The position numbers and the translations under genes were made by a program. The notes beneath the pieces are model-generated. The model made no database searches. It saw only the letters and a program-made list of their open reading frames with translations, and was not told the origin of the DNA. From Paramoeba atlantica (lineage: Eukaryota > Protista > Discosea), in contig CDRNVI010000057.1 in the NCBI GenBank assembly GCA_977017575.1, positions 1-33,160 on the forward strand: a DNA stretch of 33,160 nucleotides. The letters are read 5' to 3'. Positions 7,528-33,160 of this stretch are shown piece after piece (within the stretch, counting starts at the first letter, position 1; the number at the start of each line of letters is the position of its first letter).

Positions 7528-8926
7528 TTCCGTCGTGGTGTGTCTCGAGTTTTGTGCGTTCATAGCGGTGCACTTTACCTTGCTTTTTCATGTGATAATG
7601 GAAACTCCACGATTTCCCTCGCTGAACGATCCTTACAGCCCCCCCCCCCCCAAGCAAGGCGACATTCACCACCGTAGGTCGCATTGATGAATGCAATGGT
7701 GGTTTGAGTGTGCCCGTGCGAACGACCAAGAAGTGACACATACAATTTTGGCGATGACATAGTCGGGAAGAGAGGTTGAGCACGATGCGTTCACGTTTTG
7801 AACAGAGCTACGAAATCTATCGGGAAGGGGTGGGTCTTTGCAACGGCCGGGCGAAGAAATTCGTTGTTTTATACCTGGATTGTGCAGAACGTGTTTCGGA
7901 AGGTGTCACGTGGAAGGTGTTCCGCGCCATTGTGCGTCCTGTTTTCATTGTTCATGTGCTGCCCTGCCTTGCCCCAAGTAAAACATCTAGCGGAATTGTT
8001 CGATGCACGTGAAATCACGCCCTGTGCATCTAACGGAATCAGTGGGATCGAAGAAGACAAAGATCATTCTCCACGGAATGGGGTCGCACGGTGGATGCGA
8101 GTTTCGTGTGAAACCGACGTTTTTCCACCACACTATTACAGTACGCGCGCGCCCTGCGATTCTGTTGCTTGGAAGAGCAGGTGAAATGTAAAAGAAGTAT
8201 AGAGAAATACAACCGCCCCCCCTTGAGATGCAGGAAGCTTGTGCAATCAAGCATTGGTTTGACTAAAATAATGTCCGATGACAACAAATTCTTGCGTTAG
8301 AAGAGGGGAAGGCTTATAGTATCAGTGAAATCATGTGAAAATAGTGCCCAAAGCAAATATCAGAGCAAACCACGAGCGCTCAGAACACTCATCAAGTAGA
8401 AAGGGTTAAAATTTTTTAAGATTTGGTTCAGGGAAGAACGGACAAAAAGTGGACTGGCGAAACCCACGTTTTGATTCGCAATCATACTGACTAACGGAAA
8501 AACTCTATCTCTACAGAAAATATCGCTCGAAGCACGACCACTCAGGAGATGTAGCTTGCTGGTTCGGCGTTTCGCAATCGACGCACGCCATGCACGGAAG
8601 TCATGCAAACGTCGCGTCCAGAGATATTTGAAAACCCCCCTTCACCGTGCAGGCGGAAAGAGGTAAATCTGAGGTCATTTTGAATTTTGAGATAGGATGC
8701 GCTAAAAAGCGGTACACGTTTCGGGTTTTTTCATTCGACACGCGCACGGCCATCTACTCATTCACCGTTTCTGCCGCCAAAACGTCATCTGCTACACAGG
8801 ACAAAAAGACTTCATTTCAGCAAAGAAAATACCCTAAAATGTACCATTGCTTCTGCGATTCACGTTGCGTCTCTCCCGCGCGCCCAAAAGCGGCCACACG
8901 CTTGTGAACGAAGAGAATCGGAAAAA

Positions 8927-9007
8927 CGCGCCCAGCAGGGTTCGAACCTGCGCGTGAGAACACACCTGATTTCAAGTCAGGCCCCTTAACCACTTGGGTA
9001 TGGACGC
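8927..9007 (-). tRNA. trnS: tRNA-Ser(UGA) copy 7
   Basis: Identical to copy 1. Confidence 0.97.
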
Positions 9008-10409
9008 TTCCGTCGTGGTGTGTCTCGAGTTTTGTGCGTTCATAGCGGTGCACTTTACCTTGCTTTTTCATGTGATAATGGAAACTCCACGATTTCCCTC
9101 GCTGAACGATCCTTACAGCCCCCCCCCCCCCCCCAAGCAAGGCGACATTCACCACCGTAGGTCGCATTGATGAATGCAATGGTGGTTTGAGTGTGCCCGT
9201 GCGAACGACCAAGAAGTGACACATACAATTTTGGCGATGACATAGTCGGGAAGAGAGGTTGAGCACGATGCGTTCACGTTTTGAACAGAGCTACGAAATC
9301 TATCGGGAAGGGGTGGGTCTTTGCAACGGCCGGGCGAAGAAATTCGTTGTTTTATACCTGGATTGTGCAGAACGTGTTTCGGAAGGTGTCACGTGGAAGG
9401 TGTTCCGCGCCATTGTGCGTCCTGTTTTCATTGTTCATGTGCTGCCCTGCCTTGCCCCAAGTAAAACATCTAGCGGAATTGTTCGATGCACGTGAAATCA
9501 CGCCCTGTGCATCTAACGGAATCAGTGGGATCGAAGAAGACAAAGATCATTCTCCACGGAATGGGGTCGCACGGTGGATGCGAGTTTCGTGTGAAACCGA
9601 CGTTTTTCCACCACACTATTACAGTACGCGCGCGCCCTGCGATTCTGTTGCTTGGAAGAGCAGGTGAAATGTAAAAGAAGTATAGAGAAATACAACCGCC
9701 CCCCCTTGAGATGCAGGAAGCTTGTGCAATCAAGCATTGGTTTGACTAAAATAATGTCCGATGACAACAAATTCTTGCGTTAGAAGAGGGGAAGGCTTAT
9801 AGTATCAGTGAAATCATGTGAAAATAGTGCCCAAAGCAAATATCAGAGCAAACCACGAGCGCTCAGAACACTCATCAAGTAGAAAGGGTTAAAATTTTTT
9901 AAGATTTGTTTCAGGGAAGAACGGACAAAAAGTGGACTGGCGAAACCCACGTTTTGATTCGCAATCATACTGACTAACGGAAAAACTCTATCTCTACAGA
10001 AAATATCGCTCGAAGCACGACCACTCAGGAGATGTAGCTTGCTGGTTCGGCGTTTCGCAATCGACGCACGCCATGCACGGAAGTCATGCAAACGTCGCGT
10101 CCAGAGATATTTGAAAACCCCCCTTCACCGTGCAGGCGGAAAGAGGTAAATCTGAGGTCATTTTGAATTTTGAGATAGGATGCGCTAAAAAGCGGTACAC
10201 TTTTCGGGTTTTTTCATTCGACACGCGCACGGCCATCTACTCATTCACCGTTTCTGCCGCCAAAACGTCATCTGCTACACAGGACAAAAAGACTTCATTT
10301 CAGCAAAGAAAATACCCTAAAATGTACCATTGCTTCTGCGATTCACGTTGCGTCTCTCCCGCGCGCCCAAAAGCGGCCACACGCTTGTGAACGAAGAGAA
10401 TCGGAAAAA

Positions 10410-10490
10410 CGCGCCCAGCAGGGTTCGAACCTGCGCGTGAGAACACACCTGATTTCAAGTCAGGCCCCTTAACCACTTGGGTATGGACGC
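10410..10490 (-). tRNA. trnS: tRNA-Ser(UGA) copy 8
   Basis: Identical to copy 1. Confidence 0.97.
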
Positions 10491-11891
10491 TTCCGTCGTG
10501 GTGTGTCTCGAGTTTTGTGCGTTCATAGCGGTGCACTTTACCTTGCTTTTTCATGTGATAATGGAAACTCCACGATTTCCCTCGCTGAACGATCCTTACA
10601 GCCCCCCCCCCCCCCCAAGCAAGGCGACATTCACCACCGTAGGTCGCATTGATGAATGCAATGGTGGTTTGAGTGTGCCCGTGCGAACGACCAAGAAGTG
10701 ACACATACAATTTTGGCGATGACATAGTCGGGAAGAGAGGTTGAGCACGATGCGTTCACGTTTTGAACAGAGCTACGAAATCTATCGGGAAGGGGTGGGT
10801 CTTTGCAACGGCCGGGCGAAGAAATTCGTTGTTTTATACCTGGATTGTGCAGAACGTGTTTCGGAAGGTGTCACGTGGAAGGTGTTCCGCGCCATTGTGC
10901 GTCCTGTTTTCATTGTTCATGTGCTGCCCTGCCTTGCCCCAAGTAAAACATCTAGCGGAATTGTTCGATGCACGTGAAATCACGCCCTGTGCATCTAACG
11001 GAATCAGTGGGATCGAAGAAGACAAAGATCATTCTCCACGGAATGGGGTCGCACGGTGGATGCGAGTTTCGTGTGAAACCGACGTTTTTCCACCACACTA
11101 TTACAGTACGCGCGCGCCCTGCGATTCTGTTGCTTGGAAGAGCAGGTGAAATGTAAAAGAAGTATAGAGAAATACAACCGCCCCCCCTTGAGATGCAGGA
11201 AGCTTGTGCAATCAAGCATTGGTTTGACTAAAATAATGTCCGATGACAACAAATTCTTGCGTTAGAAGAGGGGAAGGCTTATAGTATCAGTTATCAGTGA
11301 AATCATGTGAAAATAGTGCCCAAAGCAAATATCAGAGCAAACCACGAGCGCTCAGAACACTCATCAAGTAGAAAGGGTTAAAATTTTTTAAGATTTGGTT
11401 CAGGGAAGAACGGACAAAAAGTGGACTGGCGAAACCCACGTTTTGATTCGCAATCATACTGACTAACGGAAAAACTCTATCTCTACAGAAAATATCGCTC
11501 GAAGCACGACCACTCAGGAGATGTAGCTTGCTGGTTCGGCGTTTAGCAATCGACGCACGCCATGCACGGAAGTCATGCAAACGTCGCGTCCAGAGATATT
11601 TGAAAACCCCCCTTCACCGTGCAGGCGGAAAGAGGTAAATCTGAGGTCATTTTGAATTTTGAGATAGGATGCGCTAAAAAGCTTTTCGGGCTTTTTCATT
11701 CGACACGCGCACGGCCATCTACTCATTCACCGTTTCTGCCGCCAAAACGTCATCTGCTACACAGGACAAAAAGACTTCATTTCAGCAAAGAAAATACCCT
11801 AAAATGTACCATTGCTTCTGCGATTCACGTTGCGTCTCTCCCGCGCGCCCAAAAGCGGCCACACGCTTGTGAACGAAGAGAATCGGAAAAA

Positions 11892-11972
11892 CGCGCCCAG
11901 CAGGGTTCGAACCTGCGCGTGAGAACACACCTGATTTCAAGTCAGGCCCCTTAACCACTTGGGTATGGACGC
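11892..11972 (-). tRNA. trnS: tRNA-Ser(UGA) copy 9
   Basis: Identical to copy 1. Confidence 0.97.
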
Positions 11973-13373
11973 TTCCGTCGTGGTGTGTCTCGAGTTTTGT
12001 GCGTTCATAGCGGTGCACTTTACCTTGCTTTTTCATGTGATAATGGAAACTCCACGATTTCCCTCGCTGAACGATCCTTACAGCCCCCCCCCCCCCCCAA
12101 GCAAGGCGACATTCACCACCGTAGGTCGCATTGATGAATGCAATGGTGGTTTGAGTGTGCCCGTGCGAACGACCAAGAAGTGACACATACAATTTTGGCG
12201 ATGACATAGTCGGGAAGAGAGGTTGAGCACGATGCGTTCACGTTTTGAACAGAGCTACGAAATCTATCGGGAAGGGGTGGGTCTTTGCAACGGCCGGGCG
12301 AAGAAATTCGTTGTTTTATACCTGGATTGTGCAGAACGTGTTTCGGAAGGTGTCACGTGGAAGGTGTTCCGCGCCATTGTGCGTCCTGTTTTCATTGTTC
12401 ATGTGCTGCCCTGCCTTGCCCCAAGTAAAACATCTAGCGGAATTGTTCGATGCACGTGAAATCACGCCCTGCGCATCTAACGGAATCAGTGGGATCGAAG
12501 AAGACAAAGATCATTCTCCACGGAATGGGGTCGCACGGTGGATGCGAGTTTCGTGTGAAACCGACGTTTTTCCACCACACTATTACAGTACGCGCGCGCC
12601 CTGCGATTCTGTTGCTTGGAAGAGCAGGTGAAATGTAAAAGAAGTATAGAGAAATACAACCGCCCCCCCTTGAGATGCAGGAAGCTTGTGCAATCAAGCA
12701 TTGGTTTGACTAAAATAATGTCCGATGACAACAAATTCTTGCGTTAGAAGAGGGGAAGGCTTATAGTATCAGTGAAATCATGTGAAAATAGTGCCCAAAG
12801 CAAATATCAGAGCAAACCACGAGCGCTCAGAACACTCATCAAGTAGAAAGGGTTAAAATTTTTTAAGATTTGGTTCAGGGAAGAACGGACAAAAAGTGGA
12901 CTGGCGAAACCCACGTTTTGATTCGCAATCATACTGACTAACGGAAAAACTCTATCTCTACAGAAAATATCGCTCGAAGCACGACCACTCAGGAGATGTA
13001 GCTTGCTGGTTCGGCGTTTCGCAATCGACGCACGCCATGCACGGAAGTCATGCAAACGTCGCGTCCAGAGATATTTGAAAACCCCCCTTCACCGTGCAGG
13101 CGGAAAGAGGTAAATCTGAGGTCATTTTGAATTTTGAGATAGGATGCGCTAAAAAGCGGTACACTTTTCGGGCTTTTTCATTCGACACGCGCACGGCCAT
13201 CTACTCATTCACCGTTTCTGCCGCCAAAACGTCATCTGCTACACAGGACAAAAAGACTTCATTTCAGCAAAGAAAATACCCTAAAATGTACCATTGCTTC
13301 TGCGATTCACGTTGCGTCTCTCCCGCGCGCCCAAAAGCGGCCACACGCTTGTGAACGAAGAGAATCGGAAAAA

Positions 13374-22250: not shown

Positions 22251-22331
22251 CGCGCCCAGCAGGGTTCGAACCTGCGCGTGAGAACACACCTGATTTCAAG
22301 TCAGTCCCCTTAACCACTTGGGTATGGACGC
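22251..22331 (-). tRNA. trnS: tRNA-Ser(UGA) copy 16, variant C27A (A27:G43 mismatch)
   Basis: The + strand has g>t at 22305 (tcagt instead of tcagg), which breaks the top pair of the anticodon stem. Confidence 0.85.
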
Positions 22332-28176: not shown

Positions 28177-28257
28177 CGCGCCCAGCAGGGTTCGAACCTG
28201 CGCGTGAGAACACACCTGATTTCAAGTCAGGCCCCTTAACCACTCGGGTATGGACGC
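28177..28257 (-). tRNA. trnS: tRNA-Ser(UGA) copy 20, variant A13G
   Basis: t>c at 28245 changes the D-arm to CCC-GAGTGGTTAA-GGG (G13:A22). All stems are intact. Confidence 0.95.
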
Positions 28258-29588
28258 TTCCGTCGTGGTGTGTCTCGAGTTTTGTGCGTTCATAGCGGTG
28301 CACTTTACCTTGCTTTTTCATGTGATAATGGAAACTCCACGATTTCCCTCGCTGAACGATCCTTACAGCCCCCCCCCCCCCCCAAGCAAGGCGACATTCA
28401 CCACCGTAGGTCGCATTGATGAATGCAATGGTGGTTTGAGTGTGCCCGTGCGAACGACCAAGAAGTGACACATACAATTTTGGCGATGACATAGTCGGGA
28501 AGAGAGGTTGAGCACGATGCGTTCACGTTTTGAACAGAGCTACGAAATCTATCGGGAAGGGGTGGGTCTTTGCAACGGCCGGGCGAAGAAATTCGTTGTT
28601 TTATACCTGGATTGTGCAGAACGTGTTTCGGAAGGTGTCACGTGGAAGGTGTTCCGCGCCATTGTGCGTCCTGTTTTCATTGTTCATGTGCTGCCCTGCT
28701 TTGCCCCAAGTAAAACATCTAGCGGAATTGTTCGATGCACGTGAAATCACGCCCTGCGTATCTAACGGAATCAGTGGGATCGAAGAAGACAAATATCATT
28801 CTCCACGGAATGGGGTCGCACGGTGGATGCGAGTTTCGTGTGAAACCGACGTTTTTCCACCACACTATTACAGTACGCGCGCGCCCTGCGATTCTGTTGC
28901 TTGGAAGAGCAGGTGAAATGTAAAAGAAGTATAGAGAAATACAACCGCCCCCCCTTGAGATGCAGGAAGCTTGTGCAATCAAGCATTGGTTTGACTAAAA
29001 TAATGTCCGATGACAACAAATTCTTGCGTTAGAAGAGGGGAAGGCTTATAGTATCAGTGAAATCATGTGAAAATAGTGCCCAAAGCAAATATCAGAGCAA
29101 ACCACGAGCGCTCAGAACACTCATCAAGTAGAAAGGGTTAAAATTTTTTAAGATTTGGTTCAGGGAAGAACGGACAAAAAGTGGACTGGCGAAACCCACG
29201 TTTTGATTCGCAATCATACTGACTAACGGAAAAACTCTATCTCTACAGAAAATATCGCTCGAAGCACGACCACTCAGGAGATGTAGCTTGCTGGTTCGGC
29301 GTTTCGCAATCGACGCACGCCATGCACGGAAGTCATGCAAACGTCGCGTCCAGAGATATTTGAAAACCCCCCTTCACCGTGCAGGCGGAAAGAGGTAAAT
29401 CTGAGGTCATTTTGAATTTTGAGATAGGATGCGCTAAAAAGCGGTACACTTTTCGGGCTTTTTCATTCGACACGCGCACGGCCATCTACTCATTCACCGT
29501 TTCTGCCGCCAAAACGTCATCTGCTACACAGGACAAAAAGACTTCATTTCAGCAAAGAAAATACACTAAAATGTACCATTGCTTCTGC

Positions 29589-29590
29589 GT
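29589..29590. other. Abrupt junction between the eukaryote-type tRNA array and bacterial-type DNA
   Basis: The unit continues gcttctgcg-attcacg in all other copies, but here reads gcttctgcg-tttttcacaagg. Composition falls from the high-40s % GC to roughly 40% or below (estimated by eye from sampled lines). Confidence 0.95.
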
Positions 29591-29735
29591 TTTTCACAAG
29601 GAAGGTTATATACAACTCACACGAACTAACCATTTGTTTTATCAGCCAAAAAGTGCAATTAATCAAGGAACTTAACCCTTGTTTTGTCGTCTAAATGATT
29701 GCGGCACAAGAATCAGCAACAAACGGCGGTACACG

Positions 29736-30311
29736 ATGGGTTATGCAAAACAACAGACTACCTATTTAGGACAGCATTTTTTAATTGCGATGCCTAAACG
29801 CACATCACTCCAATTTATTGATGCATTAACCTACATTTGTGATCACAGTGAGGAAGGCGCCATGGGGGTTATTGTTAATTACCCACTTGAGTTGACATTA
29901 GCAGATATGTTGGTACAAATGGGGATTAAACAAGATCCTAAAGTCGATTGCAGTCAGTCAGTTTACTATGGTGGTCCGATTCAATGTGAACGTGGTTTTG
30001 TATTGCATCGTCCACATGGAAAGTGGTATGCAAGTTTGCCGTTAGATGATGAATTAATGATGACAACATCACGTGATATTTTAGAAGCAATGGCAGTTGG
30101 GAACGGCCCGACAGAGACGATGGTCTTTCTGGGCTATTCTGGTTGGGAAGCGGGTCAATTGGAAATGGAAATGGCAAATAATACCTGGTTAAGTAGTCCG
30201 GCTGATTTATCGATCTTATTTCAGGTGCCGTATCAACAACGTCGCCAAGCAGCAGCACGCATATTGGGTGTTGACTTAAGCACATTATCACATGATGCTG
30301 GACATGCTTAA
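29736..30311 (+). CDS. yqgE: YqgE/AlgH family protein (UPF0301)
   Basis: Motifs HFLIAMP, ICDHSEEGAMGVIVN, YYGGP..ERGFVLH, FLGYSGWEAGQLE.E...NTWL and C-terminal AGHA. ATG at 29736 (191 aa) is preferred over the ORF-track TTG at 29679 because the family is about 190 aa long. Confidence 0.95.
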   Translation: MGYAKQQTTYLGQHFLIAMPKRTSLQFIDALTYICDHSEEGAMGVIVNYPLELTLADMLVQMGIKQDPKVDCSQSVYYGGPIQCERGFVLHRPHGKWYASLPLDDELMMTTSRDILEAMAVGNGPTETMVFLGYSGWEAGQLEMEMANNTWLSSPADLSILFQVPYQQRRQAAARILGVDLSTLSHDAGHA

Positions 30312-30312
30312 A

Positions 30313-30762
30313 ATGACAAATACAATGGATGTTACACCACTGGTTGCGCTAGGTTTTGATTTTGGAATGAAACGTATTGGTGCTGCAGTTGGGCAGACAG
30401 TAACACGTAGTGCAACACCACTTAATGTATTACCTGCAACAGATGGGATCCCTGACTGGCAAACAATAGATGAATTAGTTAAGCAATGGCAGCCAACTGT
30501 ATTGGTGGTCGGTTTGCCCTTGAACATGGATGGCAGTGCGCAGACAATTACACATGCAGCTAAACGTTTTGGTGAACGTTTAGTAAATCGTTATCAGTTA
30601 CCTGTACATTATATTGATGAGCGTTTAACCTCAGTGGATGCGCGTGCCAAGCTCTATGCGGATGGTGGTTATCGTGCATTGAAAAATAATAGTATTGATA
30701 GCGTTGCAGCTCAGTTGATCTTAGAGACATGGATGTTGGAACATTATGGTGGCTCAAAATAA
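30313..30762 (+). CDS. ruvX: YqgF/RuvX family RNase H-fold nuclease (pre-16S rRNA maturation / putative Holliday junction resolvase)
   Basis: Motifs LGFDFGMKRIG, VVGLPLNMDG, DERLTS and DSVAAQLIL, directly after yqgE. The start is uncertain (ATG at 30304, 30313 or 30325). Confidence 0.95.
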   Translation: MTNTMDVTPLVALGFDFGMKRIGAAVGQTVTRSATPLNVLPATDGIPDWQTIDELVKQWQPTVLVVGLPLNMDGSAQTITHAAKRFGERLVNRYQLPVHYIDERLTSVDARAKLYADGGYRALKNNSIDSVAAQLILETWMLEHYGGSK

Positions 30763-30789
30763 CCGCAATTCAAACATTATCGAGCTGAT

Positions 30790-30819
30790 TTGCCAATCGC
30801 TAAGCAATTACGTTATAGT
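30790..30819 (+). promoter_or_regulatory. Candidate sigma70 promoter for pyrB
   Basis: TTGCCA (30790-30795), an 18-bp spacer, then TATAGT (30814-30819). Each box matches consensus at 5 of 6 positions and sits about 30 bp before the pyrB ATG. Confidence 0.45.
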
Positions 30820-30849
30820 CATGCGCAATTAGCCTAAATAGAACAGCAC

Positions 30850-31788
30850 ATGGCAACAGTCCAATTACCACATTTAATCGATATTGAATCACTTTCTAGT
30901 GACACGATTACAGCGCTGTTAACCCAAGCAAATACTTATTTACAACAAGCAACAACAGCGCCAATTAACACACCATTGACACATAAAACCGTTGCAACGT
31001 TATTTTACGAAAACAGCACACGCACACGTATGTCATTTCAGCTGGCAGCCCATCGCTTACATGCTTACTGCATTGACTTTAACAAGCAGGGTTCATCTGT
31101 TAGTAAAGGTGAATCGTTAATAGATACAGCAGCCAGCCTAATTGCAATGGGCGCTAATGTTTTAATTGTGCGTCATCCTCACGACAAAATAGCAACAATT
31201 TTAGCAGAAAAGTTTACTGATCAGGCAGCAATTATTAATGCAGGTGATGGTATGTATGCACACCCAACCCAAGCATTATTAGATGTGTTGACTATTCAGC
31301 AACACAAACCAAACTTTAAGGCATTAAAGGTTGCCATCATTGGTGATGTATCGCATTCACGCGTAGCACGTTCACAAATTTGTGCATTAAGTAAATTGGG
31401 TGTGAGTGACATTCGTGTAGTTGCACCAACAGCATTATTACCAACCGATATCCAACAGTGGCCAGTAACAGTCATGGCGGATATTGAACAAGGGCTATCG
31501 GGTGTAGATGTTGTGATTTGTTTGCGGATTCAAACAGAACGGATCGCAACCAATCAATGTCCAGATGTGACTACCTATCACCAGCAATTTGGTGTATCTG
31601 CACAGCGTTTAGCATTAGCCAAGCCAGATGCCATCGTAATGCATCCAGGACCAATCAACCGCGGTGTTGAAATTGATGATGCTGTTGCCGATGGGTCACA
31701 ATCAGTGATCTTACACCAAGTACGTAATAGTGTTCCGATGCGTATGGCTGTGTTAACTGTCATTGCAAATACACGATGGTCACTGTAA
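30850..31788 (+). CDS. pyrB: Aspartate carbamoyltransferase catalytic subunit
   Basis: Motifs FYENSTRTRMSF (carbamoyl-phosphate binding), INAGDG..AHPTQALLD, GDVSHSRVARS, LRIQTER and MHPGP; 312 aa. Confidence 0.97.
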   Translation: MATVQLPHLIDIESLSSDTITALLTQANTYLQQATTAPINTPLTHKTVATLFYENSTRTRMSFQLAAHRLHAYCIDFNKQGSSVSKGESLIDTAASLIAMGANVLIVRHPHDKIATILAEKFTDQAAIINAGDGMYAHPTQALLDVLTIQQHKPNFKALKVAIIGDVSHSRVARSQICALSKLGVSDIRVVAPTALLPTDIQQWPVTVMADIEQGLSGVDVVICLRIQTERIATNQCPDVTTYHQQFGVSAQRLALAKPDAIVMHPGPINRGVEIDDAVADGSQSVILHQVRNSVPMRMAVLTVIANTRWSL

Positions 31789-33109
31789 TTACTTATTTTC
31801 TAATAAATATGCAATTTTAGTACACACTTTATTAGATAATGGTTTACTAAAAATAGTATCACAGTACGGTTTGTAATTGCTGTCATCTAATGTTTGATTG
31901 TCATGTGCTGTTAAGCCGATGATCAGTGTTTTTTGATTGGGTGTGCTATGTGTTCGGATTTGTTTAGCTACCTCAAAACCGTTCATATCAGGCAAGGTAA
32001 TATCGAGTATCACAACATCGTAAGCATGTTGATTAGCTAATTGAATGGCATCTGCACCTAGCTTGGCATGATCTAGTGTACTATTAAACTGTTCAGTCAG
32101 CATATAACTGGCAACTGTGCTGGCAATCGTGTCATCTTCAACTAATAGTATGCGCCATTGTTTAGCTATTTTATCTGGAGTAGCTTGTTGGTAATGTGTT
32201 GATGACGACGAATCATCATCAGCTAAGTTGGTTGCTTTCTGTTGTGTGGCTGTGTTGGGTAATGCGAGTGGAATAATACAGGTAAATGTTGCCCCTTTAC
32301 CTTCATCACTGACGACATCGATTTTCCCATGTAACTTTTCAATCCATTTTTTAGTTTGCCATAAACCTAATCCATTGCCTTCAAATTGTTTAGTATCATA
32401 GTAAGTGTGTACTTGACTAAAGCGATCAAAAATAATGTCTTGTTTATCTTTGGCAATACCTATCCCAGTGTCAGTGACTTGCAAGATTAGATTAAGCTTA
32501 TCCGTTTGCTCAACAGGTTCAAAATTAACGATAACACTTATGTCGCCTGCTTCAGTGAATTTGAGCGCATTAGTCAGTAAGTTCAGTAAAATTTGTTTTA
32601 GGATTGTTTGATCACCGATAAATTGAGTTGGAGCTTTGTTTGGATAATGAATTTGTAAATCCAATGACTTTTGCTTAATCGCTGGTGCCACCATAGCTTG
32701 TACATGTGCTAATGTTTCTTGCAAGTTTAAATGACGTTAATGTTGGCTTAATATGATAATCTATTTGCGTGCTAATATTACTAAGCACATCGTTTACTAA
32801 TGTCAGTAACTGTTCAGATGAAGAAATAATATAGCTAATTAATTCAGATTTTTCTGGATCGGTTTCACATTTTTTTAAAATGCTTGCCGCACCTAAAATA
32901 CCAGTAAAAGGTGTACGCACATCGTGACTAATATTAGCAATAGAAGCAGCTTGCGTTTGCATGATTGCTGTCATGCATTCATTTGCAAGTTGTATTTCTT
33001 GTTGCTGTTGCTGCAACGTAGTGTAACGCGCTTGGAGATTAGCAAGAGATTGTTTGAGTTGCTGTATTTCTGCAGCATGCATTGCATCTGGCGTGGTTTT
33101 TTCAACCAT
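31789..33109 (-). pseudogene. Hybrid sensor histidine kinase (HisKA + HATPase_c + REC) split by a one-base frameshift near 32726-32728 (pseudogene or sequencing error)
   Basis: ORF 33109-32675 carries the H-box SHDVRTP. ORF 32724-31789 carries the N-box LLNLLTNALKF, G1 DTGIGI, F IFDRF, G2 GNGLGL and a receiver domain (LLVEDD, LDITLPDMNG, GLTAH, SKP). Removing one A from TCA TTT AAA CTT GCA gives ...SFNLQETL... and a single 439-aa protein. Confidence 0.85.
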
Positions 33110-33160
33110 AAATCCAATCCCTGTTTGGGGCCCACGAATAATTTTTTAAAGAAAGTTGAC

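Follow-up and report, generated by a model that had tools for sequence, protein, structure and literature searches.

Tandem arrays of tRNA genes are found in eukaryotes, among them Entamoeba and some vertebrates. Over most of its length the window (the whole 33,160-bp stretch of Paramoeba atlantica contig CDRNVI010000057.1 that was analysed) resembles such arrays. A unit of about 1.5 kb is repeated head to tail, and it carries Pol III-type tRNA genes with no encoded CCA and with a run of T residues downstream. Unlike the arrays of Entamoeba and vertebrates, the one in the window has a single tRNA species per unit and a GC content of about 49%. The array ends abruptly at position 29589, and from 29590 to the end of the window the sequence is bacterial.

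Near-identical symbiont DNA lying beside host repeats and carrying its first inactivating mutations is a configuration that recalls Wolbachia DNA in chromosome 4 of Drosophila ananassae, as that case is presented where PMC8495745 cites it. Genuine endosymbiont-to-nucleus transfers are recognized by many spanning reads, nuclear-level depth, and persistence in cured lines; in the present case, four sequencing runs contained the unjoined forms only.

The other close parallel is technical. Chimeric reads make up 0.02–3.17% of long-read libraries, mostly in ligation-based preparations, and have been named as a hazard in the validation of LGT, explicitly that from endosymbiont to host (PMC8495745). 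Chimeric PacBio and ONT reads, which arise by ligation or in silico, join unrelated parents bluntly and at arbitrary positions, both parents being abundant and the junction being unsupported elsewhere (PMC8495745). The joint in the window is like them in bluntness and in the abundance of both parents, and at the level of assembled contigs no support for it was seen elsewhere. Unlike the usual chimeric reads, which are generally discarded by assemblers, this one seems to have been kept in an assembled contig. The analysis below leads to the view that the joint is an artefact, namely a chimeric molecule or read that joined two abundant DNA species, with a probability of roughly 0.9.

The tRNA-Ser Array

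ARAGORN located 20 tRNA-Ser(UGA) genes on the minus strand of positions 1–29589 with a period of 1478–1483 bp, the last copy lying at 28177–28257. These positions, together with pairwise alignment, delimit the feature at 1–29589 (minus strand) as a eukaryotic nuclear tandem array: 20 units of approximately 1481 bp that each carry a single tRNA-Ser(UGA) gene, plus a partial unit. An encoded CCA is absent and TTTTT follows directly downstream in 20 of 20 copies; the features of a Pol III tRNA array (tandem units, no CCA, and an oligo-T terminator) are therefore present in every one of them. Rfam confirmed both of the tRNA-Ser copies that lie in the stretch searched with it (n = 2). No Pfam domains were found in the open reading frames (ORFs) of the array spacers, and Tandem Repeats Finder, with a longest period of 500, reported no repeat for the array.

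Neighbouring units are 99.3–100% identical. As far as 29589, the final partial unit matches the preceding one almost perfectly (2 mismatches over 641 bp); beyond that point the alignment collapses. Since a 21st tRNA gene would be expected to start at about 29659, the break falls 70 bp before it, as a preliminary description of the locus had stated. That description had also recognized CCA-less, T5-terminated tRNA genes of eukaryotic type, which holds for all 20 copies.

The 81-nt tRNA gene occurs in 4 sequence variants among the 20 copies, 16 of which are identical. The variant copies start at 22251, 25213, 26695, and 28177. In units 18 and 19, position 1 of the tRNA is A rather than G; the first base pair of the acceptor stem is thereby disrupted, and the Rfam score is 50 bits as compared with 61 bits. 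The copy at 28177–28257 has a G at tRNA position 13 that is specific to unit 20. As the variants are grouped at the right-hand end of the array, homogenization seems to be weaker toward that end. Moreover, the many extra spacer variants in the Logan contigs of the runs described below indicate that additional diverged copies of the array exist in the genome. The tRNA array itself is genuine and is unrelated to the artefact.

The Bacterial Segment and Its Source

At the joint the GC content falls from about 0.47–0.51 in the array to 0.36–0.42 in the bacterial part. The 3,571 bases from 29590 onward hold yqgE, ruvX, pyrB, and a hybrid histidine kinase gene. Intergenic DNA (29590–29735, plus strand) precedes yqgE (29736–30311, plus strand), which encodes a YqgE/AlgH family protein of 191 amino acids and matches NCBIfam NF001266 with 223 bits against a cutoff of 198. 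Its ATG at 29736 lies 146 bp after 29590, the distance given in the preliminary description. The next gene, ruvX (also yqgF; 30313–30762, plus strand), encodes a Holliday junction resolvase-like protein and matches TIGR00250. Its start was taken from a 149-amino-acid gene call in the bacterial genome described below, and the longest ORF begins at 30292. It is followed by pyrB (30850–31788, plus strand), for the 312-amino-acid catalytic subunit of aspartate carbamoyltransferase, which matches NF002032. The three family matches bear out the earlier reading of a bacterial yqgE-yqgF-pyrB order past the break. A hybrid sensor histidine kinase/response regulator gene lies on the minus strand (31789–33109); it is split into two overlapping ORFs in the window and is an intact 439-amino-acid gene in the bacterial genome. 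A scan of the bacterial intergenic region for promoters and terminators yielded matches at chance level.

The source of this DNA was found in the ENA assembly ERZ24900291, on contig ctg4025c (2,447,832 bp), which is apparently circular judging from the suffix ‘c’ in its name. A stretch covering approximately 595–617 kb of this contig was fetched. Positions 29590–33160 of the window form one alignment with positions 8741–12310 of the fetched stretch, with 99.94% identity and with its left edge precisely at 29590. PyrB and YqgE are found on ctg4025c with exactly the same protein sequences, and yqgE, ruvX, and pyrB are 100% identical in the two sequences. To the left of yqgE, ctg4025c carries an ankyrin-repeat gene, a gene with a Peptidase_C80 domain, an ABC transporter, a second ankyrin-repeat gene, and priA. 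The breakpoint of the window maps to an intergenic spacer, 92 bp past the stop of the ankyrin-repeat gene, and the sequence of ctg4025c is unbroken across this position. The array unit had no match in any of the fetched bacterial loci (about 22 kb of ctg4025c). Similarly, a public collection of gene positions held yqgE solely on the 2.45-Mb contig, with no entry in which it stands beside the array.

A second public assembly, ERZ26167977, includes contig ctg6910_3.31x_l (12,131 bp, linear, 3.31x), which covers the same bacterial region and begins just left of ruvX. It is 100% identical to ctg4025c over 11,531 bp, and this stray shows that low-coverage leftover contigs of the bacterium occur in that assembly.

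The best PyrB matches, from Pseudomonas, Marinomonas, Marinobacter, and similar genomes, are about 52% identical in a biased set, the candidates among the GTDB species representatives having been pre-picked by one peptide pattern; this set yielded no close named relative. A search of the ESM Atlas returned generic aspartate carbamoyltransferase clusters only, and a literature search for a kinetoplastid gammaproteobacterial or Legionellales endosymbiont gave nothing relevant. The bacterium may belong to an undescribed host-associated gammaproteobacterial lineage. Near yqgE, ctg4025c also carries pilMNOPQ-like type IV pilus genes and a two-ORF insertion sequence (DUF4096 and DDE_Tnp_1), and the Peptidase_C80 domain is of the self-cleaving toxin type. 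The ankyrin-repeat genes, the C80 protein, the type IV pilus genes, and the insertion sequence, taken with the genome size (about 2.45 Mb), would fit a host-associated lifestyle. The bacterium is probably a symbiont. Two marine metagenome runs contained 5–6% of the sampled words of 28300–30880, words that may belong to the array or to the bacterial side; such matches hint at a marine habitat for either the organism or its bacterium.

Private Differences in the Bacterial Segment

The window and ctg4025c differ at two positions, both in the kinase gene. At 32513 the window has A in place of G, a substitution that turns Ala into Val in the kinase (codon 199). The other difference is an additional T at 32726 (TT to TTT); it causes a frameshift around codon 128 of the 439-amino-acid kinase and gives rise to the two ORFs. 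Neither the A at 32513 nor the extra T at 32726 was present in the two independent assemblies with ctg4025c and ctg6910_3.31x_l, and both were absent at full depth from the Logan contigs of all four runs; neither recurred at nuclear depth in these independent data. The truncated 144-amino-acid kinase product has no record in public assemblies. The window ends 434 bp past the last private difference. A homopolymer indel and a substitution within 3.6 kb fit what is typical of poorly corrected sequence from a single read, and real mutations of a nuclear copy would have the same appearance.

Structure of the Joint

The joint was compared by lining up the window, the canonical continuation of the array, and the bacterial flank. 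Across 29589/29590 the window reads TTCTGCG followed by TTTTTCACAAGG, where the array would canonically continue from TTCTGCG into ATTCACGTTGCG and the bacterial flank reads AGCCTACC before TTTTTCACAAGG. The breakpoint is blunt: there are no extra letters, no Ns, and no adapter letters, and the in-register homology amounts to zero bases. The loose ttcac similarity that had been pointed out beside the break is indeed there as a common TTCAC, shifted by two bases and thus out of register. A target-site duplication, a terminal inverted repeat, a transposase, and an integrase were all sought at the joint and none was found, in agreement with the preliminary description, and a search for repeats and inverted repeats gave short matches at chance level only. 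Blunt ligation of two fragments would produce a joint of this kind, free of such signatures. The 30-mer spanning the junction occurs once in the window and was not found in JGI metagenome contigs, a search that is little informative.

Continuity and Depth in Independent Runs

Four runs of the same organism (X3–X6) contain 71–80% of the sampled words of a stretch centred on the junction, and their Logan assembled contigs (contigs rather than raw reads) were placed on 28300–33160. Assembled contigs lose low-frequency branches and might therefore fail to show a single-copy nuclear junction next to an array of high copy number and an abundant bacterium. With Logan contigs, which drop rare variants, no contig bridging 29589/29590 was found in any of the four runs, and the several independent contigs spanning host and bacterium that would mark a real junction did not appear among them. 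Instead, both parent sequences run on uninterrupted over the breakpoint in 4 of 4 runs, as the bacterial one does on ctg4025c. On the host side, an array contig extends beyond 29589 with ATTCACGTTGCGTCTCTC, which is how the unit canonically continues. On the bacterial side, a contig extends left over 29590 into GGGTATTGGCTTAGAATTACAAAGCCTACC, identical to ctg4025c; one such contig is 35.6 kb long and reaches 25 kb left of the breakpoint.

Sequencing depth on the two sides was likewise uncoupled. For X3–X6, which may be DNA or RNA runs, the depths of array and bacterium were 182 and 854, 151 and 66.5, 3458 and 13469, and 1392 and 8403, which correspond to array-to-bacterium ratios of 0.21, 2.3, 0.26, and 0.17. 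A ratio that varies between 0.17 and 2.3 from run to run indicates that the two sides lie on different molecules in bulk DNA.

These data bear on the checks proposed in the preliminary description. A sharp depth step at 29589/29590 is present in all four runs, with an inconsistent ratio. The alternative left flank of the bacterial sequence was recovered from all four runs and from the 2.45-Mb contig, and spanning support was found in none of the runs, at the level of Logan contigs.

Origin of the Joint

Several observations come together at the joint: both parents are uninterrupted at the breakpoint, the junction is unseen in the other contigs compared, the depths are uncoupled, and the tail carries private, error-like differences. 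In every other data set the array and the bacterial sequence continue separately, and this favours a chimera. The length of the tail points in the same direction, since the many spanning reads of a real junction should extend the contig by about one read length more, and only 3.57 kb of bacterial DNA is present. Moreover, the array and the bacterium both rank with the most abundant DNA species of the libraries, and random chimeras are likeliest to form between such species. A ranking of artefact above real insertion or capture had already been offered, and the lack of a bridging contig, the uncoupled depths, and the separate continuation of both parents uphold it.

In the proposed scheme, one chimeric DNA molecule or read would consist of a fragment of the high-copy host tRNA-Ser array and a fragment of the genome of the co-sequenced bacterium. 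Most probably the two were joined by blunt ligation during library preparation, or two molecules were read as one. The assembler would then have anchored the array half on genuine array reads and let the contig end in the 3.57-kb bacterial tail. We infer that a single read stands behind the joint.

Several of the same features would also be accounted for if symbiont DNA had very recently been inserted into the nucleus of the host, by non-homologous end joining where the tRNA-Ser array ends, and if its kinase gene were now decaying. The junction is clean, without Ns or adapter letters. One of the two private differences inactivates the kinase, as might occur in a non-functional nuclear copy, and Logan contigs cannot show absence. 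Against these points, a bridging contig was seen in 0 of 4 runs and both unjoined forms were seen in 4 of 4, and the depth ratio of array to bacterium is uncoupled. The window ends only 434 bp past the last variant and holds just 3.57 kb of bacterial DNA, although spanning reads should extend further. In addition, yqgE, ruvX, and pyrB have remained 100% identical to those of the free bacterium, and the product of the variant kinase is in no public assembly. Such an insertion is accordingly regarded as improbable.

Slightly less credible still is a misjoin of two genuine contigs by an assembler or scaffolder, through a false overlap or end joining and with no chimeric molecule involved. The window does resemble a small and maybe weakly supported contig, and the 12-kb stray ctg6910_3.31x_l duplicates the same bacterial region in a second assembly. 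Yet the joint has zero in-register homology, with TTCAC offset by two bases, and thus has no overlap by which an assembler could misjoin two real contigs; an overlap-based misjoin was judged unlikely on this ground. It also lacks Ns, and the private differences in the tail suggest the sequence of a single read and not a consensus of the abundant bacterial reads.

Capture of host DNA by the bacterium, with the tRNA array placed in the bacterial chromosome, had also been put forward and is extremely unlikely: nothing but the window itself speaks for it, ctg4025c has its ankyrin-repeat gene at that place and no array match in the ~22 kb fetched, each of the four runs has bacterial contigs that pass straight through the breakpoint, and the depth of the array changes irrespective of that of the bacterium, so that the unbroken ctg4025c refutes it for the bulk population and only a rare subpopulation could remain.

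Implications

The junction between the tRNA-Ser array and the bacterial genes is almost certainly not a biological feature. If it were, that is, if at least 3.6 kb had really been inserted by end joining, a symbiont-to-nucleus transfer would have been caught nearly in the act. Anyone taking the contig at face value would report a protist case of gene transfer from symbiont to nucleus. Recognition of its end as almost certainly chimeric averts a mistaken LGT report and marks the contig for removal or for splitting at 29589/29590. For the organism itself, the finding means that the assembly includes sequence of a co-sequenced bacterium with a genome of about 2.45 Mb and with ankyrin-repeat genes.
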